From Octopus bimaculoides (Eukaryota): a stretch of DNA of 59,710 nt. The stretch lies in NCBI RefSeq assembly GCF_001194135.2, contig NC_068984.1, positions 123,038,102 to 123,097,811 of the forward strand, read 5' to 3'. Made by a program: the position numbers and the translations under genes. Shown piece by piece: positions 2-55,370 of this stretch. Position 1 is the stretch's first letter, and each line of letters begins with the position of its first letter. The notes below the pieces were generated by a model. It was given only the letters and a program-made list of their open reading frames with translations, was not told where the DNA came from and did no database searches.

Positions 2-2870
2 GGTCAAGGTCACCAGCTACCTGTAGAGCCACTCACTCGTAAAGATATTCATGTTGTTGAGTCATCTATTGATCACGTTGATCAACAAGTCCCACTTCCT
101 ACTGCTCAAAATGTCAGACGATCTGTAGGTGGCGGTGTTTATCATGTTGACCAGCCTGTTGCTCTGGAAACTTTGCACCGTGTTGAGAAACCTTCTTTTC
201 AAAATGGAGAGTATCCTGTCAATCAATCAGTTGACAGCATTGAACCAGTTGATGCCAACATTTCTTATAGTCAACAAATTCCGTCTGATCAAGATTATAA
301 CATTGGAAATCTATCTACTCCAGATATTCAACATGTAGAAATGTCAAAAGGTGAAGATACTTTTGAATATCGTGATCTACCACAAACTGGTGAAGAGCTG
401 CCGGTTACTAAAGTTACCAAACCGACTGGTCCATTTGGTGTCTACCATGTTGATCTTCCTGTAGATCTAGAACAATTACGTCGTGTTGACCCACCTTCTC
501 GTCCAGTCAGCTCTCAAGATATTGACAAATCACTTACTCAAGCTGACATCCCATCAACTGAAGGCTTCTCGGAAGGTATTGAACACACTATTGGAGAATA
601 TCAAACCACACCTGTTGATGTTGTTCCAGGTCAAGGTCACCAGCTACCTGTAGAGCCACTCACTCGTAAAGATATTCATGTTGTTGAGTCATCTATTGAT
701 CACGTTGNNNNNNNNNNNNNNNNNNNNNNNNNNNNNNNNNNNNNNNNNNNNNNNNNNNNNNNNNNNNNNNNNNNNNNNNNNNNNNNNNNNNNNNNNNNNN
801 NNNNNNNNNNNNNNNNNNNNNNNNNNNNNNNNNNNNNNNNNNNNNNNNNNNNNNNNNNNNNNNNNNNNNNNNNNNNNNNNNNNNNNNNNNNNNNNNNNNN
901 NNNNNNNNNNNNNNNNNNNNNNNNNNNNNNNNNNNNNNNNNNNNNNNNNNNNNNNNNNNNNNNNNNNNNNNNNNNNNNNNNNNNNNNNNNNNNNNNNNNN
1001 NNNNNNNNNNNNNNNNCAACAAGTCCCTCTTCCTCATGCTCAAAATGTCAGACGATCTGTAGGTGGAGGTGTTTATCATGTTGACCAGCCTGTTGCTCTG
1101 GAAACTTTGCACCGTGTTGAGAAACCTTCCTTTCAAAATGGAGAGTATCCTGTCAATCAATCAGTTGATAGCATTGAACCAGTTGATGCCAACATTTCTT
1201 ATAGTCAACAAATTCCGTCTGATCAAGATTATAACATTGGAAATCTATCTGCTCCAGATATTCCACATGTAGAAATGACGAAAACTGGAGATGATGATGA
1301 ATATTATGATGTACCAACTGGTGAACAGCTGCCAGATACTAAAGTTACTAAACGTACTGGTCCATTTGGTGTCTACCATGTTGATCGTCCTGTTGATCTA
1401 GAACAATTACATCGTGTTGACCCACCTTCTCGTCCAGTCAGCTCTCAAGTTACTGACAGATCACTTACTCAAGCTGATATCCCAACTCCTCAAGATGTAC
1501 CAGAAGTTATTAAACACACTATTGGAGAATATCACACAACACCCTCTGGTCTCTCTGCTGGCCAAGACCATTTGCAAGATGATCATAAAATTAAACTGCC
1601 CATTGCTCATGATGTGCACAATGCTAAAATAGCCACTGATGATTCTGATGCTGTTCATATTCCTACTGACCAATATGGCCAGCATATTGCTCTGTCCACT
1701 GCTCAAGTTAATAAGGGTAATAGACTGTCCTTTGGTGCAGGTGTTTACCATGTGGATGTCCCAGTTGATCTTGAACGTCTGCACAGAGTTGACATGTCGG
1801 ATGGAAAGAGATGTCTGAGCTCAACTGATGAACCATCTACTCAGAATGTCCAAGAATCTAATAAAGATATCCAAAAAAGTATTGATCCATTTGGTCAAGT
1901 TTCATTCCCAGACGTTAATTTCGCTTTTGGTCAAGATCTCCAGCTGCCTGTGGAATCACTCACACGTAAAGATCTTCAAAGTGTTGAAATGTCAGTTGAC
2001 CAAGATCGCATTGATCCATCAAGGGATCGTAGTAATGTGCAAGCAGATCTACCCACTGGTCGAAATGTCAGACAATCTATTGATAGAGGTGTTTATCATG
2101 TTGACCAGCCTGTTATTCCAGGAACTTTGCGCTATGTTGACAGAGAGTATCCTGTTGGTCAGTCAGTTGATACTACTGGAACATATGATGTCAATCTTCC
2201 TCATGGTCAACAAATTCTACCTGATCAAGATTATAATATTGAAATACTCTCTCCTCAAGATATTCCACATATACAAATGTCCAAAACTAAAGATAATTTT
2301 CAGTATCATGATCTGCCAGCTAGTGAACAACTGCAAAGTATTGATGTTGCCAAACCTAGTGGTCCATTTGGTGTCTACCATGTTGATCTTCCTGTAGATC
2401 TAGAACAGCTACATCGTGCTGCCAAACCTTCTTCTCAAGGTGGCTCTCAGTCTGTTGATAAACCAGCAGGCAGTGCTGACATCACTACACGTCATGATAC
2501 CCCAGAAATTATTGGACAGTCTATTGGAGAATATCATACAACACCTGATCTTCCTGCTAGTCAAGGCCATTTGCCTTCTAAACAAGATTATCATATAATC
2601 AAACAGCCCATTGCTCAAGGTGTTCAATATACTAAAATATCCACTCAAGATACTGATGCCGTTCATATTCCTACTGACCAATATGGCCAGCATATTTCTC
2701 CATCTACTGCTCAAGATGATCAGGGTAATAGACTGTCCATTGGTGCAGGTGTTTATCATGTGGATGTTCCAGATAATCTTGAAAAGCTGCACAGAGTTGA
2801 CCAACATAGTCAGCAGAGACCTACAAGCGATACTGATCAACCTACTCATCAGGATGTACAAGGTAATATT
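2..2870 (+). repeat. Coding tandem repeat: 627-bp (209-aa) unit grading into a ~1-kb higher-order unit, with 8 GVYHVD motifs
   Basis: GGTCAAGGTCACCAGCTACCTGTAGAGCC recurs at 2 and 629 (627-bp period), and 1017-1560 matches 83-628. GVYHVD occurs near 131, 437, 1066, 1368, 1740, 2088, 2369 and 2748. Confidence 0.9.
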
Positions 2871-5800
2871 GGTTTACACACTGCTCAGGATGTTGAAAAC
2901 AATGTTGTAATACCTACTCCTGAAGGTGTTCATAGTGTGACTGCGGTTTCTACTCCAGGAATACAGCATATGTCATCTAAAATTGTAGATATGCAGTCTC
3001 CTGTCACATTCACTGACCTGAAATTTCCACTTGCTCAGGAACAGCATACTGGTGAAGGTATTCCAGTTCCCACAAGTCAAGATCAACTGCAAAAGACAGA
3101 TATTCACATTGGTGAAGGCCAAGAGCTGTCAACTATTGAGCAGCTCACAGATAAAAGTAGTTCCTGTGTTGATCCACATGGTTTTGGTTTACCATCCATT
3201 CAAGACAATACATACATTGGTGGGTTACCAGTTCATGCTGAGCTTCCTAGTAGCCAAAAGGATCATCGTGATGGTCTTTCAACTAATCAGCCTTCCTTCC
3301 ATAGTGACACCCCAACAGGTGGTTCACGTCTGCATCATGTTGACCTTTCCACAGGTCAAGATAGTTGCAAGCATACTGACTTATCTGTTGATCAAGATCC
3401 TTTAGTTGACAATTTTCCTGCCGATCAGTACTGCTTTTATGTTGACCCCCCTGTCTCTCAACAAATTCTCCTTGTACATCAAACTATTGGCCCAACCATG
3501 GACATACATGCACCTCTACACGGTTTTCATCTCCCCACTGGTCAAGATGTTCAACAACATATTCCTCTTCAGTCTCATCAAGTTGAATTACGTCATGATG
3601 ATTCTCGAACTGAAGATGGTAATCAAGATGCTAACAAAATTGTTGGAGTTCATTGTGATAAAGTATCTACTGGTGGTCAAATTCTAACCACAGTCCTGAC
3701 CTCTGACAGGGATGTTGGTCACCTTCGAGAGGAAGATCATCATGTTGATGGAAGTGTCAGTTCAGATGGGACTGTCCCAAGCATTCAGGCGCAAGTACAA
3801 AATCTTAACTTAACCTCATGCCAAGGACAGCTGAAAAAAGATGACCTATCCAGTGGGCAAGATCAGTTCAAGTCAGTTCAACATACTGGTCAACATAGAG
3901 ATGACCATGAACGTCAGTATGGCCTCAAACACAGTGACCAAGATGAAGACCATGAATGTCAGTATGGCCTCAAACATACTGACCAACATGGAGATGATCA
4001 TGAATGTCAGTATGGCCTCAAACATACTGACCAACATGGAGATGACCATGAATGTCGGTATGGCCTCAAACATACTGACCAACATGGAGATGACCATGAA
4101 TGTCAGTATGGCCTCAAACACAGTGACCAAGATGATGACCATGAATGTCAGTATGGCCTCAAACATACTGACCAACATGGAGATGACCATGAATGTCAGT
4201 ATGGCCTCAAACATACTGACCAACATGGAGATGACCATGAATGTCGGTATGGCCTCAAACATACTGACCAACATGGAGATGACCATGAATGTCGGTATGG
4301 TCTCAAACATACTGACCAACATGGAGATGACCATGAATGTCAGTATGGCCTCAAACATACTGANNNNNNNNNNNNNNNNNNNNNNNNNNNNNNNNNNNNN
4401 NNNNNNNNNNNNNNNNNNNNNNNNNNNNNNNNNNNNNNNNNNNATCAACATGGAGATGATCATGAATGTCGGTATGGCCTCAAACATACTGACCAACATG
4501 GAGATGACCATGAATGTCGGTATGGCCTCAAACATACTGACCAACATGAAGATGACCATGAATGTCGGTATGGTCTCAAACATACTGACCAACATGGAGA
4601 TGACCATGAATGTCAGTATGGCCTCAAACATACTGATCAACATGGAGATGATCATGAATGTCGGTATGGCCTCAAACATACTGATCAACATGGAGATGAT
4701 CATGAATGTCGGTATGGCCTCAAACATACTGACCAACATGGAGATGACCATGAATGTCGGTATGGCTTCAAACATACTGACCAACATGGAGATGACCATG
4801 AATGTCGGTATGGTTTCAAACATACTGACCAACATGGAGATGACCATGAATGTCAGTATGGCCTCAAACATACTGACCAAGATGATGACCATGAATGTCG
4901 GTATGGCCTCAAACATACTGACCAACATGGAGATGACAGTGAATGTCGGTACGGCCTCAAAGACAGTGAACAACGTCAAGATGACTTACAATGTCAATAT
5001 AGCATCAAATACATTGACCAACATGCAGATAACAAAGAATGCGAGTATAGCCCCAAACATACTGACCACGGTAATGTCTTTGAATGTCAGTATGCCCTCA
5101 AACATAGTGGTCAGTATAGGGATGATCAATACTGCTTTTATATTGACCCCCCTGTCTCTCAACAAATTCTCCGTGTACCTCAAACTATTGACCTAACCAT
5201 GGACATGCATGCACCTCTACACGGTTTTCATCTCCCCACTGGTCAAGACGTTCAACAACATATTCCTCTTCAGTCTCATCAAGTTGAATTACGTCATGCT
5301 GATTCTCGAACTGGTGAAAATGGTAATCAAGTTGGTGACAAAACTGTTGGGATTCATTGTGATAAAGTATCTACTGGTGGTCAGATTCTAACCACTGTTC
5401 TTACATCTGACAGTGATGTTGGTCACCTTCAAGAGGGAGATGGAATAGTCTCCGTCGTTCAGACACATGTACAAAAGAACCTCACCTCTGATGAAGCTCA
5501 ATTGCAAAAAGATGACCTTTCCACTGGACAAGGTCAGTTCAAGTTAGTTCAAGGTACTGAACAGCAAGGCACTGAATATAGCTTTGAACAAGGTCTTAAA
5601 CAGAGCAGCAGCACTGAATACAAGTACACTTTTGAACATACTGGCCAATCAGGTGAAAGTAGTAGCTATAATATTGAACAAATACACACCACAAAGGATT
5701 TTCCAAAATCTGATGAGCTCTCTGGTCATCAACAGAGTGATGTGTCCATTCTCCATCTTTCCACTCAACAACCTGATGCACTTTCTAGTAGTCACTCCCA

Positions 5801-6000
5801 AAGTAGCACTACTCAGCAAGGTGACATTTCATATTCAACTCACATATCATCTCAGTCAACTTCAGACCAAGATACTCTCCAATTCCAAGACTCTCGCACA
5901 CCAACCGTTCTATCTGACCCCACTAAAGAGGTCACAACAAAAAAGTCTTCACGGAAAAATCGTAAATCAAATCGTAAGAAGAAAAAATCATCTTCACAAG
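2..6000 (+). CDS. Giant exon A (5' end outside window): GVYHVD repeats, His/Asp/Cys 16-aa array, polybasic end
   Basis: Open frame from base 2 to the gap at 708-1016, continuing 1017-6000. The apparent frame change across the gap is a gap-size artefact, because the repeat unit shows the join. Donor is CAAG|GTAATT at 6000/6001, phase 1. Confidence 0.88.
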
Positions 6001-8258: not shown

Positions 8259-8309
<51 letters not shown>

Positions 8310-10052
8310 AAAACAGGATATTTATAACATATGTANNNNNNNNNNGTATAAAACAGGATATTTATAACATATGTAATTACATATGTCAAGCATATATGAA
8401 CAACTTTACCGATCAATTTGTAATTACTCAAAATCCTCATCATCATCATTGTCATCACCATCATTATCATCTTCGACTTTGTGGCCAGCATGGCTAAATC
8501 AGTGGGACCAAATGTAATAAATGGACTACTTAATAGATATAGAATGAACGGTCGGCATTTGAAAAGTTGTATTTACATGGAGTACAGCAATAAATAGCTT
8601 ACCAATATAAACACTCATGCACATTCACTCTATTAACAAAACAAAGAACAAGAACCAGGGACTCTCAGTGATGCAGTTGTCTGAACCAAGGGTACTGTCA
8701 CAACACCCTAGTATCATAAGTAGCAACAAGTGGTCTCACATGATTTTCTTTTCCCATCAGTTTCATCAGTAGTTCATTATTGCATACGCACACACACATT
8801 GATTGGGTTTTATTCTACTAAAAACAAAAAAATATATATTTTAATTTACTTCATAATTTTGAAACATTAGCTTGACCAGTTTCTTGAGTTACTCAAGAGG
8901 ACACTCAAGTAAATACTCAACTATATATATAAAAGACTTTTGGGTATATTGAAATTAGATGTGAAACAATGGTTGGGAGGTAGGAGTGTATGATGATGAT
9001 GAAGAAAAGGTTAATAAGTACAGCCACAAATGTGTTGAATTATTGGCACGAGTGATTCCTCCAAAATAGAACTTTGGAAAGATCAATATGAGTCATATCA
9101 TCATCATTTCCATCATCATTTCCATCATCATTTTACATCTGCTTTCCATGCTGGTTTGGCTCAGATCATTCAACAGGATCTGATCGGTTGGAGGCCCACA
9201 TCTTGCTCCAGTGTCTTGCTTTGTCTTGAGCTCGATGGCTGGATGCCCTTCATGGATGGCTACACTTTAGAGAGTGTATCAGGAGCATATTTGTCGTGAC
9301 ACCAGCACAGTAGAGGTTCTCTTGCTCTCAGCAAGACTTGAGAGAATACTCTCAACTTTCACATATGTATTATAATTAATTCTTCATAAGGAGTAAACCA
9401 ATGAGATTGTTCAGTTTTTGAAAGAAAAGGTGTTAGAAAACCCACAGGTACAGATTAATTAATGATTTGTTATATGTGTAGCCATGCTTAAACAGAGAAG
9501 TCCATTAGCAAACTATGATGTACATAAATGTATGCATATTCTAATAACTGATATATACACACATATACAAAACAACTACTCAGAGAAATTGGCTATAATT
9601 TTCAGTCAAAAATTGTTTTCTTCTTTAATTCATTAACTTTTCAGCATGTTTTCATCTCAGCATCATGTTTCTGTTTCCATTACCTCCTATATTCATTTTG
9701 TTGCCATGGTTACCATCTCCCCCATCTCTGTTGTTTAACTTGATTTGATTTGCATGTTTATATAATTATTTTGATTGTTTTTGCCATTGTTGTTAATGTT
9801 GTTTAACCCCAGGTCAGATCTTATCCAGCAAACTTATAATCAAAGACATTACAGCCGTGACCATCACATCTTCTATTCAGGCATAGTGTATCAAGGAATA
9901 CATTATCCAATATGTCCTTCCATTTTTTTTAAGATGGTAGGATGTGATTTAAGGGAGATTTCGTTATTATATCTAATAGATGGAGTAACTACATATAGGG
10001 TTCTTCGTTGTTTCATAGTTCACCTTGTTGTCATAGTTGTTGATGTTGTTAT

Positions 10053-10083
<31 letters not shown>

Positions 10084-12644: not shown

Positions 12645-12722
<78 letters not shown>

Positions 12723-37772: not shown

Positions 37773-37814
<42 letters not shown>

Positions 37815-44166: not shown

Positions 44167-44202
<36 letters not shown>

Positions 44203-47200
44203 TTACATGTATGCAATTGTACATGTGTGTGTGTATGTATATACGTGTATATACACATGCACACACACGCTACATATACACATATGAGCTTTCAGCTTTT
44301 GGTTCAATGGTTTGCTTTCTTGCAGGCTGATATTAAATAATATAACATTATATTTAATGATATAACATGATATCCAGTGATATTAAAATGGCAACATTAC
44401 TCGTTCTCATGCAATTAATTTTATTGGATAATGTGTGTTTTAGTCCGCCTAATTTCGGCTGTAAGTTGGTTCTGGGTTAAATACTTTCGGGTGAAAATCT
44501 TTAAACATTAAAAATTCTTTTTTAAAATCATCTCTTCTTCTGTCACCCTTCCTCTCCTTTCCAGATTTGTTCATATATTAAGGCTTTTCTCTCAATTCTA
44601 GAATACTCATTACCACAACAACCAAAAAAAAAATAATATGTGAAAGAATTTTGTTATTTTTTCCAAAAATAGAAAAATTTCTGATGGAAATAGTATGTTT
44701 GCTTTTGTTGTGATTTTTATTCTCTTAAAAAATTAATGAAACATGACTCTCAAATTCTACATCAGATTATTGTTACTGAGTAGTACTGTTCTATTCTATT
44801 TAAGTAGATTTATAGTACAGAGCTAGCTGATTGGACAAACCATTCTGATCAGATTTCTGGCTATAACCATCTTGTCTTTATTATAAGGAATTTTGTTCCT
44901 TGAGATTTAGAGCTGAAAACCTATGTTAATATAAAACTAATAAAGAGTTTATTGAGATATTTGACTTCTAGATTGCACAGACCAACTGGCTCCATAGAGA
45001 TTCTCCCACTAGTTTTCCTTTTTTTTTTTTTTTTCTCTTGTTCTACATGCATAGGTATTTTTCTCAGTTGACTTAGCAGTGAGAAAAGGTTCTGCGATAA
45101 CTAAGAATAAATTGTGCAAGTATCTTTTAAAATTTAAGAGATTTATCCAGCATATCACAATTTAACTTTGCTGCTTTCTCAGATCTACAATATCTGAGTT
45201 TCTTCACAAAGAAACTTTCAAAGAACCAATCCTATGCTCACTGTAAGAGCTTTAAGAATGAAAGCAAAATGACAATCACTCATAAAACACTACAAAAGCA
45301 ATTAGTAAATTTTATAAAGTTTTAAGCTTTTATTTGTTTATTGTTTTTTTGTTGCTGCTGTCTTAATTTTAGCATTTAACTATTCTGTACTGACGTAGGT
45401 TGAATATTTCTGCAAAATTAAATATTTACAGCAATTGCATTAAAATGTTATAAAGTTACGTAGCCTTTTCAGTCATTAATCACACAACTATAAGTTAAGA
45501 GTGGTGGGTTGACTGATGCAAAGTTGTTGTTCAGTGATTCCTTCCCACATCCACTTCCCTCATTTATCATTGATAAAGGATTCTTGGGCAACTTGAGTTG
45601 TATGCCTTGCCTAAGGAGACAATAAAATTCAAGCCATATTGGTGTTTAGTTGATACCTTAACACCTTCCTTATTGTCTCTCTATGGTTTTACCTAAATAA
45701 TAAGGGTGTATTTCTTCTATATTTCCTAATTTCTCATTGGTTTAAGTTCTTTTATAATTACAGAGTAATGTTCTTTATATTTATAGAGTAGATATGTAAC
45801 ACATGCATTAAGTTTCCATTCTATTATTTTTCACTTCATTTATATATAAATTAAGAAATGCATTGATCCCTTCTATTAACAGTTATATACTAATTCTCCT
45901 TATTAATAAGCTTTATATGAGATAAACATAATAATATTCTAGATCTCCTTATAATTTTATTAGATCAGCTTACTAATAACAATTCATCAGATGATATTAC
46001 TAACCCATTATCATCATCCTTCTCTCTAGATATTTTGTGCACTTTCATCTGACATTTCTTTCTAACAATTCACTAAGCTACTTCTATGTTATGTTTCCTA
46101 ATTGTTCTGCATTCTACTCCACTGTCAGTCGAATGGTGGCAGTCTACTAACACACTAATATCACCCTGATTTCTATAGATGCCGAGATGCGTGACACCAG
46201 TGAAGAAAAAACAGAAGAAACGGATGTGGAAGAGCAGTTCTCTCCCCTTCCTAAAAGTTCTCCTGCTTCTAAAGGTGCTCTTGATCTTAGGTTAGAAGAC
46301 AAGTTCTTTTCGTTCACCCAATCCCCTGTGGAGTCCCCAGCTGCTGAAATAGCAAATGAGATATCTCCAGCTCAAGATCTCCTTGACGTCAAAGACATGC
46401 AAATAACTGTTGGCCTATCACCATCGGAGATTAATGCTAAGTCCAAGCTGGGATCTCTTTCAGAATTCTATGAAACAAAAACAACTGAAGACTTCAAAAC
46501 AATGTCAAAAATTATCTCCTCAAAATCCCCCAGAGTAGAATATGAGAAAGATACTGGTGAATCTTTCAACATCCCTAAGATTTCAACCGATTCTGATACA
46601 ACTGAGGAAAGACTAGAGCTTGATAATGTAACAGAACAATCTGCTACATCATTAATGTCTGAAGAACATGATGGAACCGAAGATGACTATAAAAGAGAAA
46701 CACCTGAAGAAAGAGCGGAACGTTTATCTTCCATGGCCTTTGATAACATGGGTTTTGCTGGTGAAGATGTTGTCGACAGTGAAATAAAGACACACTCTGA
46801 TGACTTCTCTGAAGAGAGTCCAAGTCTTGCTGCCAAAGAAATATCTCCAGAAGATCTTGAAGAGAAGCCTCATCAATTTGACTTCCCAGCTGTCCATCAA
46901 GAAATATGGCAGATGGGTATCCAGGCACTGGGGAAAACCAAATTATCAGAAGAGAATGAGATGTTTTCCAGCTCAATGAAATTTGAAGAAGTAACACACA
47001 AGGTCTCATTTGAAAAAGATGACGATGAGGAGAGTGGTGCTGCAATGTATTCTGAGAGTGAAGAAACCTCCCGTTCAGAAAGTGGAGATACTAAAGATCA
47101 GAACTCTTTCCAAGAATCTATCCAAAGATCTAAAACATCTGATGGCCAATTTGAAGCTACCTCAGAAATAAGAACAGAAAAAACCATTGTAACATCATCC

Positions 47201-50200
47201 CGAGCACAAGTCTCTTTGTCAGAGAGTCAAAGTAAAATGATAACTGAAACTAAGGTCTATCAAGCAAAAGAACCCAGTGAAGAAATTCAACTTACCGGAC
47301 ATGATGCCACAGAGAAAACAGCTAGACTTCTTACAACCACGGCTAGTGAGCCCATTATTTCTCATCCATTCGATCAGTCTACAGTGGAAACTATATCTCC
47401 AGAGGCCAGTAGTTCTGACAGTGAAGGTTTCTATGACAAAGAATCTGGCAAGAAGTTACCTTGGGAAACTGTCCACCATTTCTCCCGACAGTTCTCTGAT
47501 AATTATCTTGAACAGCAAGAAAAACAAGGAATAGTTACTGTGCAGTCAGTTGACATGGGAGTATTTTACCGGAGAAGTAGCAAAGACTATTCAAACGTAA
47601 CATTTAGTGAACAAGATATCTCTGAGTCTATTGCTGAAGAAGAAGAAGAACCCCCAAAACGGGTTACCTTCACGCTTTCGGAAGATTTGGAAGAGTTTCC
47701 ATCAGAAGTAGTTACAGGTTCGGATGAGTCAAAACATGATGATGAAGTTGAACAAGAAATTAGGAAACCAGATGATATCTTTGATGAGTCCGTCAAAGAT
47801 CAAATTGTAGTCAAGACAGTAAAAAAACAACCTACTGCACTATCCAAAGTAGATGCTGTTGTTATCACAACATCTAAGACAGAAGAACCTATTGTCACAA
47901 CATCCAAGATGGAAGAACCTGTTGTCACAACATCCAGGACAGAAGAACCAGTTGTCACAACATCAGAAGAACCTGTCGTCACAACATCCAAGACAGAAGA
48001 ACCCATTGTCACAACATCTAAAACAGAAAAGTCTGTCTTCTCAAAATTCAAGACAGAAGAACATGTTACATCTTCTAAAGGCGAGGAACCTGTCATCACT
48101 ACAGTGAAGACAGAACACATAACTACAACATACAAAACTGGAGAACCTATCATCACAACTTCCAAGAAAGAAGAGTCTGTCATCAAAACCTCTAAAACAG
48201 AAGAACCTGTCATCACAACATCAAGGACAGAAGACATTACTATAGCATCCGAGGCTGAAGAACCTGCCATTGTAACCTCCAAGACAGAAGAACATGTTAC
48301 AACATCAACAACTGAAGAACCTGTCATTACAACATCTAAAACTGAAGAATATGTTACATCTACAACTGAAGAACCTGTCATTACAACATCTAAAACTGAA
48401 GAATACGTTACATCTACAACTGAAGAACCTGTCATTACAACATCTAAAACTGAAGAATACGTTACAACATCTAAGACTGAAGAACCTGTCATTGTAACCT
48501 CCAAGACTGAAGAACGTGTTATAACATCTACAACCAAAGAACCTGTTGTCACAACATTCAAGACAGAAGAACATGTTAAAACATCCAAAACTGAAGAATG
48601 TGTCATCACAACATCTAAGGCAGAGGAACCTGTCAGTACAACAACAGAGACAGAAGAACATGTTACTACAGAATCTGAAAGTGAAGAACCTGTTGTCACA
48701 ACAACCAGGACAGAACGTATCATCAGAACATCTAAAATTGGAGAGCCTGTCATCACAACATCAAAAACAGAACATGTTACGACAACATCTAAAACTGGTG
48801 AACCTGATGTTACAACAACCAAAACAGAAGAATTTGTCACTACAACATCAGAACCTGGAGAACCTGTCATCACAACCTCTGAAACTGGTGAACCTGTCAT
48901 CACAACATCCAAGACAGAAGAACGTGTCATCACAACATCCAAGAGAGAAGAACCTGTCATCAGAACATCTAAGACAGAACATTTCACTGTGGATTCAAAA
49001 GAAAAATTTGACATACCAACTGCCAAAACAGACCATGTTACTACAACAACTAAGTCAGCACATGTCACTGTAACTTCCACTGTAGAACATGTCGTCAAAA
49101 CGTCCAAGAAAAAAGGTGATATTGAAGAAGCTGAGGAACATGTCACCATAACATCTAGGGAAAAACATGTTCCAGAGGAACCTAAAGCTGAGGAAGAGTC
49201 TGCAGTGGAAGCCAAGAAAGATATCCTTGAACCATATGACAGGATGTCTGGAGAATATGAAGCTACTGTTTTGGCTAATATAATGGATGACCATTCTTCA
49301 AAACAAGAAAAAACATCTGAATCACCTGAAGAATTATCTAGAGAAGACACTTTAAAAGAGAAAGATCTTGAGTATGAAATGGTCTCTAAGAGTGCTACTG
49401 ACTTGGCTAGTCCTAGTGAAAGTAAGTCTTCAGACCTTTCATTAGATCTTTCATCAGAAAAACTTCCATCAAAAGATAATCTTGATGAAGAACAACAACA
49501 ACAACTTCGACCAAAACCAGACAGTGAAGAAGTATCACCAAAATCAGGAATAATCGGTGTTGTAAGTATTGAATCTCGGATGGCCCAAAAAGAATTATTA
49601 CAGGAGTCAGCAGACGAGAAGGATCGCTCCCTTTCACCATCAGTTGACAGTGATGAATTATCAACCACTTATGAAAGCCAGGCAGAACTACAGGAAGAAC
49701 TCTGGTCTGAAATCCCCCCTGTTGATCGCTATCCTGGCCCTGCCAGAAGGAAGCATTATGCTGATGGTGAATCCTCAGAAACTGAGAAAGAATCTCCTGA
49801 AATTGAACTTTCTCCTATTGCTGAAGCACCAGCCTCTAAAACTGACTCCGAGGAGCAAGAAGAGAGTAAGATGACAGCGCAAGATAGAAGGGTAACATTT
49901 CTATCAGAAGAGAGTAAGGAGAAGCTGAGGCAATCTATTTCTAATGAAGATTTAGTTAAAACATCGACCTCTTCCTCTGAAGTATCCAACGAACCAACTT
50001 TATTAGCTGCTTCATATGATTTGGATTCAGGGCATGTTTCACACATTGTGACAGCTTATGACATGTCTCCAGACACCATTGAGAGTCAGGTGCCACATCC
50101 ACCGGCACCTAAGGCTATTCTTTCGAGTCCTGAAGATGACGTGTTTGAAGTTGAACCTACTGTGGGAACTTCTCGCATCGACGAGCCTTGCACTGAGCCA

Positions 50201-53200
50201 GATTCTGAGAAGAGTTATACCGGGCCTCAGTCTGAGGTCATCATTATAGAAGACATTTGCGTCAGCAAAGACAAAACGGGGTCGGAGTCGACGGAATCTT
50301 TACCGCCAACTCCTGCACCGACGCCGAAAGATGCAACCACCATCAAAGATACCGTTTGTAATCTTCAAGACGCAGCCAACAAGCTGCAGACCGAAGGTCT
50401 CTTTGATCGGCAGTTTGGATCTGTAAGCAGTGAAACTTCTGAAAAACGTCCTTCAAGTTTTGAAAAGGACCTTTCAAAAGACGAAAGCAGTGATGATGAT
50501 GATGATCATGGCCAATCATTTGAAATGGTTTCACCAACTGAAATTATTGGCTATGATCAGTATGCTGCTAAATATTTACAAGGTGGTATAGCGGGATGCA
50601 TTGAAACAGCAAGTTTGACCGCTTCAGTGGAATCCCTCTCTACATCCGGAAGTAGTTTTGCTGACCTCAGAGCTAGTGAGCCCACAAGTATGAAGTCTAG
50701 TTTAGAAGAGTTTGCAAGTGCTACAGCTTTTGTTGAACCATCAGCACCTCCAATGGAAGAAGTATGTAAGATCCCCAGTTCTCACACCATGAAACCTGAT
50801 ACCGATTCCTCACCAGATCAGTCGCTTTTCAGCAGTAGCGATGCTTCAGAGAAAGGGGCAGCCACTATGGATATTGTTGCCTCCAGTGTTGCATCCCCAG
50901 GTGCATGCCGTCCTGATTTGTTGCCCTCTGACTCTTTTCAAAAGAGTTTGTCTACAGAGGAGATCAGTGAAACTGAAAATATCGAAGACATTGCTGCCGA
51001 CAGAATCTCCCAATTACCAAATGGTCCTACAGAGGTAGATTTTCAACCAGACATTGACTCTGTGTCATCTACTGTTAAAACTGTGGTGCCTGCAGCACCA
51101 CCAGATTTGGTTCAGTCATCACCCTCATATGTTATGGAAGAAGAAAAATCACAGCAGGAAGATGTTGCCATAGAACTAGAAGACAATCAAATATCGGCTG
51201 GTTCTGATGCTGCTGTCAGAGATGTCATGACCGATAGCTTGATAGAAGATGTGAAGTTGTCGGCTGAGCAACAGGAAGTCTTGGTAACGTCAGATCAGAC
51301 TTTATATGAACTTGAAATGCCAATGGAGGAAGAAGCTTCCCCTATTGAACAAGTTGGTCCAACATCAGCTACTGTTTCCATAACTGAAACCACGTCATCT
51401 GTGGTGGTTAAAACAGAAGCCCCTACACCAATGGAATTTCATGAAGAACAACAGTGTGAGGTATATCCAGCTGAAATGGTAGAGTCTGGATCTCCAACTG
51501 AAATTATTGGACTGGAACCAGTGTTAGATGACCTTGAAGAACAGCCATATGAGTTGAAGAAAGATGAAATTTATCCTGGTAAAAGAGCACTTGAGTTTGA
51601 TGTGTCTAGCTATGAAACTTTGTTAGAAGAAAGCAAAGAAAGACAGCAAGAAGGAGAGACTAGTGCGGTAGAGGTTAGCCATCTAATTAGAGAAGATCAG
51701 AGGATTAATCTGGATGATACTGATGAAGAAACAGTTCAGTTTTCGGATCAGCTAAAATCCGATCATGATGCAAGTTTTGTTCATACTTCAGAAAAAGTGT
51801 GTACAGACATGGTAGAAGAAGAATTTAGTGATTTAAGTAAAGATGCTTCTTATGAGCAAGTTGAACTGGCTGAAAGTAGTCTAGAATTTGCTGAGAAAGC
51901 TGAAGAAGAACTTGAAGCATTAGCAGGAAAAACCCCAGAAATATCATTTGAACCAACTAAAGGGGAACAAGATTTGGACAGACCCATATCCCCAACACCC
52001 CAGGATTCTCAAGAAGGTGTCCTCAGTGATGATTATGAGAAGGTTAGTGCTAGTATTAGCACAGAAGAACTAGAGAAAACAGCTACAGTGTTTGTAGACT
52101 CTGTTCTTGAAGAAGCCTCCAAAGTTCAGGAGAAAGTCCAGGAATTCCCTGAACAAACAGAAGCTGAAAAGCCAATCGATGAAACAACTCTTGATGATAG
52201 CAAGGACTCTGAAAAAATGCTTGCTTTCTCATTTTCTGAACAATTTGACCCATCAATGATGTGTCGGTCACAACCAGCTTTTTTCTCGGCGCCACCTCCA
52301 CCTTCCCATCCTCCTCCTTTCACAAAACAGGGGGATGATGATATGCCCGAGATCACCATCACAGAACACCTACACAAGAGTGTTGACAAAGATGACTATC
52401 CAGCTGGCTTTGTTCCATCACATATGCCAGACTCTTCCTCTGAGCAGGAAGACAAAGATGATGAAAAAGAATCTGGAGATGATAGTCCAAAGGGTGAAGG
52501 AATGTCCTATTTTGAAATGATTCAAGATGAAATGGAATTCGAATCAGAAGAGACCGAAAAGAACGGAGTGTCATCTCATGAAACTAGTTCTTCGGCATTC
52601 ATTATCGCTGATGCTCATTCCGGTTCAGCAAAAACATTCACCAGTGAACAAGAACTTGAATGGAATGTGCAGAAATTTTCTGAAACTCCTGACAAAGTAC
52701 CAACCACTTCTTCGTTTGAAGACTCCTTTTCTCTACAAACTAAAACTGAGCCAGTTCCTATCAGTTCTTCAAAACAATTCCAAAGAGATTCTGAAACTAA
52801 AGATTCTTCTAAGAATGGTTTCCTTGGATTTGAGCCTTCGGTCATGCACGCCGCTGACATTCTGAGCCCCGAAGATATTGCTGATACATCAAGTGTGGAC
52901 AGCTTTACAACAGTCGTTGGTGTAGACCAAGAAGGGGACGAGTGTGACGATGACCGTTTGGCTGATGTGGCGTCTATGACCTCATCAATCCATTCCGACA
53001 TTTATTCAATGCACACTGAACCAGAAGAAGAAGAACCATATGACTGGCCATTATTGACAGAAGAGGACAAATCAGGGGAATCTTCTCCATGTAGCGATCG
53101 TTTTGAGATGATTGGGAAGACTGCTTTATCGGTGATATCTGAAAAGTCTGATGAAGATCGATTTGAAATGATAGAAAAAGATGAACTGGAAGCACTCTCT

Positions 53201-55370
53201 GACAGCCATTCTAGTAGCAAAACCTCACCAGAAATGATATCTGCCTCACCTGGTACTGTGGGTCACACCCATGGCTATCCAAACATACGTTACGCTGGCA
53301 GAAGTCGGGACAAAGATGATGGGTCAGCTGCTTCTTCTGTTTCTTCGTCCTTGTTAGAATTTGAACGGTTAGAAGGTGAAATAGGACAATTTGGCTCGCT
53401 TGGATCAAATGAAGCCCACAGCCTGCCTAGCTCTTTTGACAGTCGAAACTTCCATTGGCGAGCAGCTGATCGAGATGATGTGTCAGTTGCCTCTTCATTA
53501 GGAGAATTTGAACGTCTAGAGCGACAGATTGCACTCGGAGGTTCGATTGGCTCGTTTAGTTCAATAGACAAGTTGATGCCATCAGGACAAGGTAGTGCAA
53601 CTAATGGATCGATGTCATCACTGGCTGAATTTGAAAACCTCGAAAAAGAGTGCACTGGGGGTGGATACTCCAGTTCGGGAGATGATCGCCACAGTTCATC
53701 AAGTGGCCATAGCAAACGCAGTGCAAGTTCATCGCTTGCCGAATTTGAACGACTAGAACAAGAAATAGTCATATCTGAAGAACTTGCTGCCGAAGCCAAG
53801 AAAATAGCGTCAATATTGGAATCAGGGGAGCTGCCTGAATATCCAGAAAGTGAAAGTTTAGGAAGTTCATATCAATCAAATGGTCACATGAGGGATGTAC
53901 CTGAAATAATAGGTAATTTTGATATTGAACAGGACTCCATAGACGGAGACGACATTGATAAGGATTCACTTAGCTCTGAAGAACCCAAGATGCAAGATGT
54001 TAGTCAAGTGGCTAAAGAAGAAGACGACGATATAGACTCATTGGACGGAGATAGCAAAGATGAACTTACTTCTAGTGTCATCTTTGTCTCCAATGCAGAA
54101 ATACAAGATTCCAGTGAAATTGGTCAATTCGACTTTGATCGAGATTCTCTGCAAGGAGATGATACAGCAATGCAATTTTCTGTAGAATCTCTGCAGTTAG
54201 ACCAAGATGCTTCATTTGATATGCACAGTTCTGTTGATTCGTTAGAAATAAAAGACAAATTTAGTCGAGACATGCAAAGCTCAGCCGATTCTCTAGAACT
54301 GAAAGAAAGAATGAGCAAAGAAATGGTAGACTCGACAGATTCTTTGGAATTTAAAGACACTGTGAAAGATACTGATAAATTTGAAACAGATTCACTGGTT
54401 GATCAAGATGACATCATGCAAACGTCTTCTGATTCACTTGATGCTTTTCCTGCACTAACACACCAAAACATCATGGAAGCTTCTTTGGAGTCTGCTCGTT
54501 GGAGTCTAAGCAGCTCTTACTTTTCCCATTCCTCACAAGAAACATTACGATCTGAATCTCACAGTGACTCAAGCCATTCGAGAGATGTCATGCAAATGTC
54601 TGCAGAATCTGTAGATTTTGAAAAAGATAGAAGATTTGAAGGTTCCGATACCGAAATGGAGTACAAGACGGTATCAAGTAAGACATTAACATCATCTGCT
54701 TTAGATCCCGAAATCCGCATGATCACAGGAATATCTCATCCCAACAATCCTTTCTTAGATAATGAAGGCAATGTTAGGACAGATCTGGGGTATCCGGGCC
54801 ACTTTAGAAACAAATATGAATATTCAAAGTTTGACAAAGAAGGGAACTACCGTTGGAACACAGAGTTTGAAGAAACAACCAGAAACAACACATACCTCAA
54901 CTGGGGTCCTTATCAAGAGAAAAAGAAGGTTTACACCATGACAGAATGGGAAGCCATGCGCAACGCTAAAAAGAGAAGTGCTGATAATGAAGAACTTGGC
55001 GGGGACAGTGAACAAGTGTCTGTGATTCCTGATAATCACTTTGCCCAACTTAACAACAAAGAAGCCTCTTCTAACCTTCCTTCTGAGCACACAACTTCCC
55101 ACCCTAGAACTTCTTCACCTCCTCCTTCTACCGTTTTACGGCCTTCTTCTCCTGTTTCCTCTACTACTACTGCTACTACTACTACTACCACCACTACTAC
55201 ATATTACTCCTCTTCCAATTCCTCCTCCTCTTCCTCAACCTATCATGCTGCTGTGACTCGGCCTGACTCCAGCTCCACCAGTCAAACTGCTGCTACCTCC
55301 GATCCTCTGCTATACGATCACAGTATGTCGGACACTACTACTACTACTACTGTCCATAAATCCAGTAGAG
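2..55370 (+). CDS. Interior coding region (7 exons) of a very large gene; probable giant ankyrin (Ank2/unc-44-like) giant-exon region, partial at both ends
   Basis: Seven + strand exons with canonical AG/GT sites, all phase 1, chain into one open frame of about 23.2 kb (about 7,700 aa). Identity is inferred from the giant exons, an AnkG/AnkB-type extended LIR (EEDFEIIEQEEILEAK) and S/T/E/P-rich disordered repeats. No ANK/ZU5/UPA/death domain is in the window, so no symbol is given. Confidence 0.65.
3900..5120 (+). repeat. Coding minisatellite, 48-bp unit (45-bp variants), CRYGLKHTDQHGDDHE
   Basis: About 21 well-preserved units plus 3 degenerate ones, interrupted by the gap at 4364-4443. Confidence 0.95.
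6674..7090 (+). repeat. Degenerate intronic tandem repeat, core ACCATCTTTTCAGTGGTCA
   Basis: About 10 diverged recurrences of the core with irregular spacing. Confidence 0.55.
7917..8156. mobile_element. Foldback/MITE-like palindrome (~118-bp arms, 4-nt loop)
   Basis: 8005-8033 is the exact reverse complement of 8038-8066 (29 bp). Imperfect pairing extends out to ATTAAAAATGGGGAAGG / CCTTCCCCATTTTTAAT. Confidence 0.8.
9098..9310 (-). mobile_element. SINE/LINE 3' tail fragment (family 3)
   Basis: Reverse complement of the AAGGGCATCCAGC...CCAGCATGGAAA...(ATG)n tail seen at 17130-17255, 32040-32225 and 35205-35305. Confidence 0.6.
10486..10600 (-). mobile_element. tRNA-derived SINE head fragment (family 3)
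   Basis: Similar to 34990-35142 and to the reverse complement of 16820-16960. Confidence 0.5.
12649..12722. repeat. (TA)n microsatellite next to a gap (representative; others at about 8220-8300, 19630-19730, 19933-19999, 28510-28566 (ATT)n, 37776-37813 (AAT)n, 44167-44200)
   Basis: Direct reading. Confidence 0.95.
13729..13935 (+). CDS. Small cassette exon (207 bp, or 168 bp from alternative acceptor 13768): PxIxIT motif, acidic patch, polyQ/polyA
   Basis: Long pyrimidine tract then TGTTGCAG|13729, and a second acceptor CTTTCAG|13768 in the same frame. Donor AAG|GTTAGA. Phase 1-1, no stops, and more GC-rich than the flanks. Peptide ...RLAVAGKTPTITITEDSSSPHHDDDEESDDYLRFIEKHQQKMQQQQQQAAAAVAK. 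Confidence 0.8.
14370..14545 (-). mobile_element. tRNA-derived SINE (family 1), degraded
   Basis: TGGTACTTTATTTTATTGACCCC...AAAGGCAAAGTTAAC...GGATTTGAAC is the reverse complement of the copy at 28568. Confidence 0.7.
14765..15017 (-). mobile_element. tRNA-derived SINE with CORE/V/Meta-like central domain (family 2)
   Basis: Shares CAGCTGAGTGRACTRGARCAAC...GTGT..T.CTCAAGAACAC with 38215-38407 and 38630-38875. Confidence 0.65.
16820..17255 (+). mobile_element. Near full-length tRNA-derived SINE (family 3)
   Basis: Head GGCTGAGTAGTTTAGAAG...GGTTCAGT, body TTGGCATGTGTCTTCTACTATAGCC, and tail AAGGGCATCCAGCTGTAGAAA...CCATGCCAGCATGGAAAAC, shared with other copies in the window. Confidence 0.65.
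18630..18692 (+). CDS. 63-bp cassette mini-exon (GQEPTTTTTTVSSEGHGEES)
   Basis: Acceptor TACTAGCAG| (NAGNAG, alternative start 18627), donor CAG|GTAATG, 21 codons, phase 1-1, no stop. Not in the supplied ORF track because it is too short. Confidence 0.65.
19856..19937. repeat. Short inverted repeat (34-bp arms, 14-nt spacer) abutting (TA)n
   Basis: TATAAGGATTTAATTTTCGTAATGAGATAAAAAT pairs with ATTTTTATCTCATTATGAAAAGTAAATCCTTATA with about 2 mismatches. Confidence 0.8.
21584..28360 (+). CDS. Giant exon B (6777 bp, 2259 codons): KSPSP array, extended LIR, acidic disordered region
   Basis: Lies within ORF 21577-28389. An in-frame TGA at 21556 bounds it upstream, and the first AG after it is GATAG|21584. 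Donor AAAG|GTATAT at 28360/28361. Phase 1-1. Confidence 0.9.
22741..24174 (+). repeat. Coding repeat: about 50 K(S/T)PSP units of 9-10 aa, often as 19-aa doublets
   Basis: Direct reading: KSPSPEPKD / KSPSPLHLKS alternation. Confidence 0.95.
28568..28767 (+). mobile_element. tRNA-derived SINE (family 1), well preserved, inside (ATT)n
   Basis: A-box-like TGGCAGAATTGTTAG, B-box-like GAGTTCAAATTC, and body CTTTGCCTTTCATCC...GATAAAATAAGTACCAG...GGGGTCGATGTAATCGAC. At least 9 related copies are in the window. Confidence 0.75.
32243..32465. mobile_element. Degraded copy of the piggyBac-like MITE at 35390
   Basis: Internal sequence is colinear with 35390-35606 (GCATTTAAAC...CCAGCCCAAA...GTTCAAACTG...ATTCTAAAAATAA...GCATT.CAT.TGACAGA), with eroded ends. 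Confidence 0.65.
33009..33851 (+). CDS. 843-bp cassette exon (281 codons), acidic/Ser-rich
   Basis: T-rich tract then TTGTGCAG|33009, donor AAAG|GTATCG, within ORF 32960-33943. Phase 1-1, with the same E/S/D-rich composition as the giant exons. Confidence 0.85.
34990..35142 (-). mobile_element. tRNA-derived SINE head (family 3)
   Basis: Reverse complement reads GTATGGCTGTGTGGTTATGAAG...GGTTCCTGGTACC...CCTTGGGAAAGTGTCTTCTACC. Confidence 0.6.
35390..35606. mobile_element. piggyBac-like MITE (217 bp) with TTAA target-site duplication
   Basis: TTAA|CCCTTTGGCA ... TGCTAAAGGG|TTAA. TTAA TSD and CCC-starting TIRs are diagnostic of the piggyBac superfamily, and a second copy lies at 32243. Confidence 0.8.
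36121..36267 (+). pseudogene. pogo/Tigger-like transposase N-terminal HTH remnant
   Basis: Translates MPDPNKQYK*VYSLQENVEIIKKICDSGSLITVGCKFGVNESTIHSIYK, resembling the CENP-B/psq-type HTH (L.EK.EII...G......FGVNESTI..I.K) of Tigger transposases, with one in-frame TGA. Recognised by eye only. Confidence 0.55.
37160..37765 (-). mobile_element. Cluster of three family-1 SINE copies separated by (AAT)n
   Basis: Repeated TGGTACTT..TTTTATT.ACC...AAAGT(T)GAC...GGATTTGAA blocks at about 37165, 37345 and 37565. Confidence 0.65.
38215..38875 (-). mobile_element. Two family-2 tRNA-derived SINE copies (38215-38407, 38630-38875)
   Basis: Reverse complement of the second copy starts GTGGAGGTGCGTGGCTTAGTGGTTAGGGTG...GGTTTCGATTCCTGG (Pol III A and B boxes), then GTGTTCTTGAGCAAAACACTT...CAGTCCACTCAGCTG. 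Confidence 0.75.
40225..40569. mobile_element. hAT-like MITE candidate (345 bp) in a TA-rich site
   Basis: Terminal inverted repeats CAGTGGCGGATCGG / CCAGTCTGCCACTG match at 11/14. The 8-bp flanks do not match (TATACATA vs TGTATATA), so a TSD is unconfirmed. Confidence 0.5.
41285..41457 (-). mobile_element. Family-1 SINE copy
   Basis: ACTGGTACTTATTTCATCAACCCCCAAAAGGATGAAAGGCAAAGTTGACC...ATTTGAACTCAGAATGTAAGGACAGATGAAA is the reverse complement of the 56773 copy. Confidence 0.7.
42715..42864 (+). CDS. 150-bp cassette exon with poly-Glu (DMPRTDQHDVQRELITAAKDEEEKEEEEEEENLSSSSSEVAQVEDVDFLP)
   Basis: Acceptor TCTCTTCTTGTCTCAG|42715, with a possible in-frame upstream acceptor TTTAG|42694. Donor CAG|GTAGCT. 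Phase 1-1. Confidence 0.8.
43307..43322 (+). other. Residual Illumina TruSeq adapter at a contig end (artefact)
   Basis: AGATCGGAAGAGCGTC, an exact match to the start of the TruSeq adapter read-through sequence, immediately before an N-gap. Confidence 0.92.
46145..46178 (+). promoter_or_regulatory. Branch point and 3' splice site of giant exon C
   Basis: Consensus TACTAAC 27 nt upstream of TTTCTATAG, with no intervening AG. Confidence 0.75.
46179..55370 (+). CDS. Giant exon C (9192 bp, 3064 codons): TTSKTEEPV array, SLxEFERLE and DSL repeats, Thr/Ser tail
   Basis: Branch point TACTAAC at 46145-46151 with an in-frame TAA at 46148. The first downstream AG is TTTCTATAG|46179. ORF 46187-55387. 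Donor GAG|GTATAT at 55370/55371. Phase 1-1. Confidence 0.9.
47860..48990 (+). repeat. Coding repeat: about 35 (V/I)TTSKTEEP(V/I) units of 9-11 aa
   Basis: Direct reading, including a near-perfect 54-bp triplication starting at 48308, 48362 and 48416. Confidence 0.95.

Follow-up and report, generated by a model that had tools for sequence, protein, structure and literature searches.

Organization of the exon array

The window, that is, the whole 59,710-bp stretch of Octopus bimaculoides DNA that was analysed, almost certainly represents the 3' part of the canonical ankyrin gene of this species, LOC106871604. It would encode the tail that giant isoforms carry after the death domain, most likely a long neuronal scaffold. 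Three giant exons (A, B and C) and four smaller exons were located (Table 1).

Table 1. Features of the window (positions relative to its first nucleotide)
Feature	Position	Strand	Details
Giant exon A	2..6000	+	open frame; 5' end upstream of the window; donor CAAG/GTAATT at 6000, phase 1
48-bp tandem array in exon A	3880..5106	+	Tandem Repeats Finder; 16-aa unit HEC(Q/R)YGLKHTDQHGDD, at least 19 copies, interrupted by the gap 4364-4443
168-bp cassette exon	13768..13935	+	best-scoring candidate of its length; phase 1 at both ends
63-bp cassette exon, QEPTTTTTTTVSSEGHGEES	18630..18692	+	phase 1 at both ends; tandem acceptor TAG/CAG
Giant exon B	21584..28360	+	6777 bp; phase 1 at both ends; in 16/16 RefSeq models
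Exon D	33009..33851	+	two phase-1 donors: 33527 (519 bp, GTGAGT) and 33851 (843 bp)
150-bp cassette exon	42715..42864	+	best-scoring candidate of its length; phase 1 at both ends
Giant exon C	46179..55370	+	9192 bp; phase 1 at both ends; alternative donor 55322
Most conserved block of exon C, EPTLLAASYDLDSGHVSHIVTAYDMSPDTIE	49991..50083	+	cross-species alignment
Amphipathic helix TATVFVDSVLEEA in exon C	52067..52126	+	in about 30 homologs
Four S-S-S-L-x-E-F-E-x-L-E motifs, then helix EAKKIASILESGEL	53342..53833	+	exon C

Stop-free stretches of the plus strand were found at positions 2-1081 and 654-6173 (exon A), 21559-28386 (B), 32957-33940 (D) and 46151-55384 (C). Since stops are expected at about 6.8% of random codons, as calculated from the base counts of the window, the probability that the open frames of B (2276 codons) and C (3078 codons) arose by chance is near 1e-69 and 1e-94, respectively. 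Exon ends were determined by searching for AG...GT pairs within the open frames, using the exon lengths given in the original prediction. This search returned a single solution each for exons B, D and C, all in phase 1, and one clearly best-scoring candidate per length for the small exons. The complete exons (168, 63/66, 6777, 519/843, 150 and 9192/9144 bp) are all multiples of three with AG/GT ends in phase 1; the 66-bp form arises when the acceptor at 18627 is used instead of that at 18630.

When the window coordinates were spliced, seven RefSeq models were reproduced residue for residue, over 5566-5978 residues. These models are predictions, and the 16 that were compared had been collected by a search with exon C. 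The predicted layout of three giant and four small exons, with phase-1 boundaries and lengths divisible by three, was confirmed by this comparison. Eleven of the 13 splice boundaries that had been proposed are exactly those of RefSeq and a twelfth is conserved across species; the acceptor at 13729, which would give a 207-bp form of the first cassette, was without support, the 207-bp form being used in 0/16 models and only the 168-bp form occurring. The phase agreement spans seven introns rather than 13 independent events, and would in any case be required of a cassette-exon array. In the models, exon C is followed by a 106-aa tail that is encoded downstream; its exons were looked for in the window and were absent from it. 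Rfam and tRNA scans of the whole window gave no match, and no Pfam match was obtained with its intronic and antisense open reading frames.

Composition of the long exons

The signature reported for long ankyrin exons is a Ser plus Glu content of about 25%, with S, E, T, D, K and P together exceeding 55% (PMC5135030). Exons B (28.5% and 63.9%, respectively) and C (28.8% and 58.2%) carry this signature; the values for exon D were 24.3% and 48.9%. Exon A, which is rich in Asp, Gln and His, falls below it (12.6% and 41.5%). None of exons A, B, C and D gave a Pfam match. Repeats of the K-S-P-S-P type occupy positions 22723-24143 of exon B, which contains 35 KSP and 97 SP, and these repeats are probably phosphorylated. 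Exon C has TTSKTEEPV-type repeats at 47860-48979. The acceptor of exon B follows a run of A and scores only -11.8, yet it is used in every model.

Two assembly gaps, 708-1016 and 4364-4443, are exonic and both lie in exon A; the other listed gaps are intronic. Across the first, a 627-bp repeat stays in register if the missing sequence is 2 nt (+627n) long, which restores the frame. The RefSeq protein XP_014787149.1 reads through this gap: 708 aa correspond to window positions 341-707, 2 nt and positions 1017-2771, with no indel and seven substitutions. Across the second gap, the 48-bp repeat stays in register with a missing length of 47 (+48n) nt, and since 47 equals 80 modulo 3, this gap is in frame as well.

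Isoforms

Short ankyrins of 1662-2012 aa end in terminal exons that lie upstream of the window, and in the giant isoforms the post-death-domain exon would be spliced into the window array instead. The array would thereby add approximately 5,600 to 7,700 residues of low-complexity, repeat-rich sequence that matches no Pfam domain. By analogy with Drosophila Ank2-L/XL, C. elegans UNC-44 and the vertebrate 440/480-kDa ankyrins, this tail most likely makes a long neuronal scaffold out of a membrane-spectrin adaptor; the scaffold would connect the axonal membrane skeleton with microtubules and further partners. The same analogy, which is drawn from phyla with long exons non-homologous to those of octopus, suggests neuronal expression and a spacer or scaffold role for the octopus tail.

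Several exons are skipped in the models, always in frame: exon A together with the 168-bp exon (P0016), the 168-bp exon (P0063 and P0070), exon D (P0064) and the 150-bp exon (P0017). The 168-bp exon is present in most of the old RefSeq models, that is, those of LOC106881226, 15 of which use exon A; exon A is skipped in XP_052823414.1. The 63-bp exon, B and C are retained in each of the 16 models, all of which were selected via exon C. The earlier proposal that any subset of the exons could be included in frame therefore holds as arithmetic, and for A, D, the 168-bp and the 150-bp exons it is borne out by the models; it has no such counterpart for B and C, which no model skips. When the segment lengths are added, the largest product, with an ankyrin N-terminus of 1842 aa, would come nearer to 9,500 aa than to the maximum of about 7,700 aa given with that proposal.

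It is quite possible, if somewhat doubtful, that B and C are constitutive within one giant class, so that the choice is a binary one between short and giant products and only exon A and the small exons are optional. Their joint presence in 16/16 models agrees with this, as does the use, in the short octopus isoforms, of other terminal exons, located upstream of the window, in place of the shared tail. However, the models had been retrieved with exon C as the query, which biases the set, and both B and C are symmetric phase-1 exons. Furthermore, in a 3.5-kb contig from another species (P0151), apparently a transcript to judge by its size, the homologous tail follows immediately on the death-domain region and every long exon is skipped.

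The exons belong to an ankyrin gene

The gene at LOC106871604 is modelled as an ankyrin whose long exons lie 3' of the death domain, as in other protostomes, because XP_052823414.1 runs from an N-terminus with ANK, ZU5, UPA and death domains into the window exons. This 7515-aa protein, isoform X43 of LOC106871604, carries the 63-bp exon, B, D, the 150-bp exon and C on that N-terminus. Pfam analysis of its residues 1-1886, which end within the window exons, identified Ank_2 (5e-194), Ank, Ank_3, Ank_4 and Ank_5, with the ANK repeats encoded outside the window, together with ZU5 (4e-38, two stretches), UPA_2 (4e-53) and Death (PF00531; 3.8e-15, residues 1688-1764). The death domain ends at approximately residue 1764; the 63-bp exon, which directly follows the post-death-domain exon, starts at residue 1843 and exon B at residue 1864. 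The ankyrin flank that the original prediction had anticipated (ANK repeats, ZU5-ZU5-UPA and a death domain) was thus found complete in one protein. Its central reading, giant internal ankyrin exons among small in-frame cassettes, was supported by this protein and by the exact splicing of the models. Nothing that it had named as speaking against this reading was encountered; the flanks, for example, are not titin-like or MAP1/Futsch.

An exhaustive search of representative sequences returned proteins of 7515 and 7658 aa that match exon C at 100% identity; the exon C-identical proteins are named O. bimaculoides XP_052823414.1 and XP_0147870xx-71xx. Word-indexed searches with the end of C (14 matches) and with a chimera of the end of B, D and the start of C (one match) missed these octopus models. 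Exact-sequence look-ups of the exon C open reading frame and of model P0016 gave no record. The locus is already modelled by RefSeq, and a giant ankyrin is a known kind of neuronal scaffold protein; our literature search turned up no publication about giant ankyrins of cephalopods.

In the RefSeq predicted models the ankyrin core lies on one mRNA with B, D, the 150-bp exon and C; exon A is linked to it only via the post-death-domain segment. An improbable alternative is that the giant exons form a separate downstream gene, the old LOC106881226, which has its own promoter and encodes giant proteins that lack ANK repeats. The older RefSeq annotation did split this part of the ankyrin gene off as a 'titin-like' gene, giving two genes, with models of 7487-7707 aa whose first residue is an internal Met. 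Exon A and ANK repeats never occur together in the 16 models, the old ones starting at the internal Met and X43 skipping A, and in the nemertean Tubulanus a frame like exon C is annotated as a gene of its own, LOC141904102, inside the ankyrin gene. Against this, ANK-ZU5-UPA-DD and five window exons (63 bp, B, D, 150 bp and C) are parts of one protein in the newer RefSeq model, and Mytilus has all of the parts in one model. The first segment of the old models that start with exon A has homologs in mollusc ankyrins (oyster, mussel and Sinanodonta), where it forms the conserved region after the death domain. In Tubulanus the frame stays open for 2.3 kb ahead of the annotated ATG, reaching back to a phase-1 acceptor that is conserved. 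The A/G junction codon implies that the post-death-domain donor has the same phase as every boundary of the array. Some transcripts could still start at an internal promoter, alongside the joined ones.

The idea that the locus codes for a titin-like or MAP1/Futsch-like protein can be dismissed: the 'titin-like' and 'Titin' names and the resemblance of the exon B K-S-P repeats to those of neurofilaments and MAP1B are outweighed by the lack of Ig, Fn3, kinase or MAP1 domains in A, B, D and C, and it is refuted by the ankyrin Pfam set of the flanking N-terminus and the exact splicing of the window exons into the models. The UniProt 'Titin' names sit on proteins with Pfam Ank, ZU5, UPA and Death domains, and both they and the RefSeq 'titin-like' label are misnomers for one ankyrin gene.

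Conservation in other animals

Relatives of exon C, exon D, the 150-bp exon and the end of exon B were found in bivalves, gastropods and a nemertean; relatives of the octopus tail exons include sequences from Mytilus, Elysia and the nemertean Tubulanus as well as many further contigs. Sites conserved elsewhere in both place and phase are the donor of B, the acceptor and both donors of D, both sites of the 150-bp exon and the acceptor of C. On sequence grounds, C, D, the 150-bp exon and the end of B are old, and exon A alone is without a relative. The earlier suggestion of a lineage-specific elaboration consequently fails for these four parts, which are shared with Mytilus, Elysia and Tubulanus, and is possible only for exon A. 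No homolog of exon A was present among the 184 other proteins compared; matches in a search with a chimera that included exon A were dominated by its UPA/death-domain part and were uninformative on exon A homologs. In a blastn comparison with the contig of a close relative, every conserved block fell at least partly within exon B, D, 150 or C.

The conserved end of exon B carries RPLSPTEYTL ... EGR..ADTSQQIFIEQ ... RPPSPSEFTL. Its donor, AAAG/GTAT, is kept in place and phase in three relative loci (L005, L001 and L003), and exon B is 44% identical to the L005 exon over 1265 aa. No cross-species match was found for the 168-bp exon, either by tblastn on loci L001-L005 or by protein comparison, and a sensitive tblastn search of these loci with the peptides of the 207-, 63- and 150-bp exons yielded only noise. 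In the close relative (L006), the counterpart of the 150-bp exon is 126 bp long, has the same splice sites and lies 3.3 kb upstream of exon C; in Mytilus, a similar segment is found just ahead of the start of the C-like part.

Exon D, which also has a Mytilus match, occurs in the RefSeq models in its 519-bp form, with the 843-bp form in none of the 16. In the close relative, the 843-bp frame is intact and has both donors, with 58% identity over 291 aa, and the end of the long form (...YIFQEKG/I) matches IVYQDKG/I in locus L004 and VQG/S in Tubulanus. The 843-bp exon of the original prediction departs from the 519 bp that RefSeq uses; its donor and extra coding sequence are nevertheless conserved in three other species.

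Exon C has 52 relatives in the representative library, and its acceptor is kept in place and phase in L001, L002, L003 and L006. The block EPTLLAASYDLDSGHVSHIVTAYDMSPDTIE is 65% identical to Tubulanus over 57 aa, with 51-56% identity over approximately 210 aa to other relatives. The helix TATVFVDSVLEEA fits the AKAP (PKA RII-binding) pattern, as judged from its sequence. The S-S-S-L-x-E-F-E-x-L-E motifs occur in three or four copies in almost every exon C homolog, and the EFExLE region gave no PDB sequence match. These conserved motifs may bind partners.

A further reading, which we consider rather unlikely, is that exon A is a cephalopod- or octopod-specific third giant exon, with repeats rich in His, Asp, Gln and Cys, and that octopus neurons combine A, B and C into ankyrins of graded length that reach about 9,500 aa; separately, that exon C is an ancient binding platform, of molluscs and nemerteans at least, composed of four F-x-x-L motifs after Ser-rich runs and the AKAP-like helix. 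If true, a shared exon C platform would be at odds with the notion that the giant exons of ankyrins have no sequence in common across phyla. The 2016 survey reports no homology between the long exons of distant phyla (PMC5135030). The conservation of C, D, the 150-bp exon and the end of B, together with the sharply conserved motif cluster, provides testable handles on binding by the giant-ankyrin tail.

Comparison with known giant ankyrins

Among the closest parallels to the octopus gene are those of Mytilus and Tubulanus, whose parts are true orthologues of the octopus parts. Isoform X43 of Mytilus trossulus LOC134725749 (XP_063445929.1) carries, behind ANK-ZU5-UPA-DD, D-like, 150-like, C-like and tail segments arranged as in octopus, and its model is 70% identical to the octopus N-terminus over 1833 aa. 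The ankyrin locus of Tubulanus polymorphus has an upstream giant repeat frame, followed by one exon that resembles the end of B, another that resembles D, and a C-like frame of 7.3 kb that sits inside a gene whose product has Ank Pfam matches. Unlike octopus, both are without a match to exon A or most of B, and the Tubulanus introns are far shorter.

Long exons downstream of the death domain are known in protostomes, and mollusc giant ankyrins with tandem long exons were already published in 2016 (Jegla et al., PMC5135030). The canonical ankyrins of Aplysia californica (XM_013084979) and Lottia gigantea share this position with octopus (PMC5135030), a likeness drawn from their description; the two long exons of Aplysia, of 7569 and 6560 bp, are in tandem, are non-homologous and carry lineage-specific repeat arrays (PMC5135030). 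O. bimaculoides joins the animals with giant ankyrins, having three long exons (A at least 6.0, B 6.8 and C 9.2 kb) compared to at most two per locus in the 23 long-exon loci surveyed in 2016.

In Drosophila melanogaster, the L and XL isoforms of Ank2 likewise arise through inclusion of long exons located 3' of the death domain, and their tail consists of large tandem repeat arrays for which a spacer and axonal scaffold role was proposed (PMC5135030). The repeat unit is 76 aa in fly Ank2, compared to 9-19 aa and 209 aa in octopus.

The vertebrate 440-kDa ankyrin-B and 480-kDa ankyrin-G (ANK2 and ANK3) have the same domain core as the octopus protein. Their giant exon is neuron-specific and encodes a disordered, S/E-rich insert, with a 12-aa P-x-S-P repeat in AnkB. 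It is single and lies upstream of the death domain, whereas the three giant exons of octopus lie downstream.

Identity of the gene

The window belongs to the octopus ankyrin gene and is the part that follows the death domain, since a protein model of this species runs from ankyrin domains directly into the exons of the window. Word-indexed searches with parts of giant exons B and C and of exon D returned relatives and one nemertean protein only. The first clue to an ankyrin came from the nemertean Tubulanus polymorphus, in which the C-like frame sits within a gene with Ank Pfam matches in its product. An exhaustive representative search then yielded two Octopus bimaculoides proteins that were 100% identical to exon C. 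One, XP_052823414.1, is the 7515-aa 'uncharacterized protein LOC106871604 isoform X43'; the other, XP_014787059.1, is 7658 aa long, is named 'titin-like isoform X6' and has 18 sister isoforms of LOC106881226. Pfam analysis of X43 residues 1-1886 identified Ank repeat families, two ZU5 stretches, UPA_2 and a Death domain, the flanking domains by which the proposed ankyrin identity was to be checked; this part was 70% identical to a Mytilus model over 1833 aa. Directly past the death-domain region X43 continues with the 63-bp exon, B, D, the 150-bp exon, C and a 106-aa tail.

The older annotation had split one ankyrin gene in two. The N-terminus of the old 'titin-like' models corresponds to the segment that is conserved after the death domain in the ankyrins of oyster, mussel and Sinanodonta, and the short 'ankyrin-2/3-like' isoforms (1662-2012 aa) use terminal exons upstream of the window. 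Many of these short isoforms are called 'Titin' in UniProt, as the giant ones were 'titin-like' in old RefSeq releases, yet their Pfam domains are Ank, ZU5, UPA and Death. Elysia crispata likewise has two annotated genes on one contig, RRG08_025644 for the ankyrin core and RRG08_025651 (6808 aa) for the giant tail.

Exon structure of the array

Stops are expected at approximately 6.8% of random codons (our arithmetic, from the window base composition), so the long frames of A, B, D and C are not due to chance. No Pfam family matched any of the four, and the tandem repeats differ between the giant frames A, B and C.

Features of the array
Feature	Window position	Strand	Details
Stop-free stretch A	2-1081 and 654-6173	+	two frames, one each side of an assembly gap
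Stop-free stretch B	21559-28386	+	2276 codons
Stop-free stretch D	32957-33940	+	
Stop-free stretch C	46151-55384	+	3078 codons
Exon A, donor	6000		
168-bp exon	13768-13935		predicted 207-bp form from 13729, in none of the models
63-bp exon	18630-18692		66-bp form from 18627
Exon B	21584-28360		
Exon D, 843-bp form	33009-33851		519-bp form, donor 33527 (GTGAGT)
150-bp exon	42715-42864		
Exon C	46179-55370		
Exon A tandem repeats			627-bp unit and 48-bp unit
Exon A 16-aa unit HEC(Q/R)YGLKHTDQHGDD	3880-5106		at least 19 copies; rich in His, Cys, Asp
Exon B tandem repeats			K-S-P-S-P units, 27/57 bp
Exon C tandem repeats			TTSKTEEPV units, ~30 bp
Exon C conserved block	49991-50083		
Exon C upstream helix	52067-52126		TATVFVDSVLEEA
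Exon C S-S-S-L-x-E-F-E-x-L-E motifs	53342-53833		four motifs and helix EAKKIASILESGEL
ORF antisense to exon C repeats	47803-49668	-	622 codons

A search within the open frames for AG...GT exons of exactly the predicted lengths gave a single solution each for B, D and C, with phase 1 at both ends. The small exons were picked by length and a simple splice-site score, and phase-1 donors near the end of exon A were found by splice-site scoring. The acceptor of B looked the weakest site, because it is preceded by an A-run instead of a pyrimidine tract. When the window coordinates were spliced and translated, seven RefSeq models were reproduced exactly over 5566-5978 residues, which confirmed the donor of A, the 168-, 63- and 150-bp exons, B and C, and with them the array of giant and small phase-1 exons originally predicted.

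The 63-bp exon has a tandem TAG/CAG acceptor; most old RefSeq models use the upstream site, which adds one Ala, and isoforms X43, X2 and X8 the downstream site. In XP_014787052.1 exon C has an extra phase-1 donor at 55322, 48 nt upstream of the main one. The predicted 207-bp extension of the 168-bp exon was present in none of the 16 RefSeq models of LOC106871604 and the older LOC106881226. Exon D has the 519-bp form in the models, not the 843 bp predicted, but the longer form is likely to be real, as a close relative's contig keeps both donors, the internal one and the distal one (CAAGAGAAAG followed by GTATCG), and the frame in full (58% identity, 291 aa), and the distal end aligns with Tubulanus and a distant contig (L004) as far as the Q(E/D)KG-I donor.

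The minus-strand ORF opposite the exon C repeats had no Pfam match. It looks like a by-product of repeat codon content, as do two further frames on that strand, 33342-34049 and 53293-53871.

Continuity of exon A

Only two listed assembly gaps fall in exons, both in A (708-1016 and 4364-4443); the others are intronic. The first is flanked by two copies of the 627-bp repeat, the register of which indicates that 2 nt are missing (plus any whole units), joining frame 2 to frame 3. XP_014787149.1 spans this gap: residues 1-708 correspond without indels to window 341-707, 2 nt and 1017-2771. All seven substitutions lie at 479-706, within the last 76 codons before the gap, and the 585 codons after it have none; a misplaced or collapsed repeat copy may make up the left flank. 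At the second gap the flanks match the 48-bp repeat if 47 (+48n) nt are absent, which modulo 3 is the same as the 80 nt written. Given these fits exon A is continuous and in frame, whatever the number of repeat units in the gaps.

The array of 16-aa units is flanked on both sides by a duplicated segment of ~110 aa. Exon A is D/Q/H-rich overall, in contrast to the S/E-rich B and C, and had no relative among 184 other proteins compared. A metal-binding role is conceivable.

Use of the exons as cassettes

Among the 16 models, exon A and the 168-bp exon are jointly skipped in X43, the 168-bp exon alone in two (P0063 and P0070), D in one (P0064) and the 150-bp exon in one (P0017). B and C are included in all 16, which is not a fair sample of B or C skipping, as the set was gathered by searching with exon C. 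In a transcript-like contig from another species (P0151) the death-domain region is joined straight to the homologous tail. The modular in-frame design is real; the proposed inclusion of any subset is unproven.

Each of the window's seven introns is in phase 1, and the Gly/Ala junction codon points to this phase for the donor of the post-death-domain exon too. Phase 1 thus held throughout, but the 13 predicted boundaries represent seven or eight linked events rather than 13 independent ones. Uniform phase is a requirement of any alternatively spliced array.

Conservation across species

One ENA contig of a related animal has counterparts of four exons. Its B-like exon, with EKPAISPVEK repeats of its own, shows 44% identity over 1265 aa and its C exon 62% over ~2,000 aa; D is also there, and the 150-bp exon has a 126-bp version. 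The contig's splice sites have the same places and phase as in the octopus, and nucleotide similarity is restricted to these four exons. The order end of B, D, (150-bp exon), C and tail is kept in two distant contigs (L001 and L004), Tubulanus and Mytilus; in Tubulanus a giant repeat frame (>5 kb) lies further upstream. The Tubulanus C-like frame (OZ123229.1, 7700-14986 of the stretch retrieved) is annotated separately as LOC141904102, with 1662 aa starting at an internal ATG. The frame stays open for another 2.3 kb upstream, as far as a conserved phase-1 acceptor with TDVEEQFSP after it, and as it lies inside the ankyrin gene, LOC141904102 is probably a mis-called giant ankyrin exon.

Judged by this sequence conservation, C, D, the 150-bp exon and the end of B are old; the repeat arrays turn over rapidly. 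Of the lineage-specific elaboration proposed originally, only exon A could still qualify.

Exon C contains a conserved cluster of four S-S-S-L-x-E-F-E-x-L-E motifs, two amphipathic helices and a further block. Among more than 50 relatives, almost all have three to four copies of the motif, and ~30 have the upstream helix. By our own reading, the F-x-x-L core after a Ser-rich run resembles the Atg8/LC3-interaction consensus and the upstream helix an AKAP RII-binding pattern; both are candidates and leads only.

Proposed function and comparison with known giant ankyrins

Transcripts would either end upstream, giving a short ankyrin, or splice into the array, adding 5,600-7,700 residues to the ankyrin core. 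The added polypeptide is repeat-rich, of low complexity and without a Pfam domain. By analogy with fly, worm and vertebrate giant ankyrins, it may act as a long axonal scaffold or spacer, in which the K-S-P repeats would be likely sites for proline-directed kinases.

The octopus feature is already in RefSeq as a model, without a name there, and its class is published; no paper on a cephalopod giant ankyrin was found in the literature library searched. The novelty is modest: the long exons number three, exon A may be specific to the lineage, and exon C has the conserved motif cluster. Giant ankyrins occur in all bilaterian groups, and the long exons of protostomes follow the death domain (Jegla et al. 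2016, PMC5135030). In that study two tandem long exons were found in 8 of 23 loci, including Aplysia (7569 and 6560 bp, mutually non-homologous); the octopus locus has a third. The S/E-rich composition shared by the published long exons is matched by octopus B and C, but not by A. Whereas Jegla et al. detected no homology of long exons between phyla (PMC5135030), exon C is clearly homologous between mollusc and nemertean.
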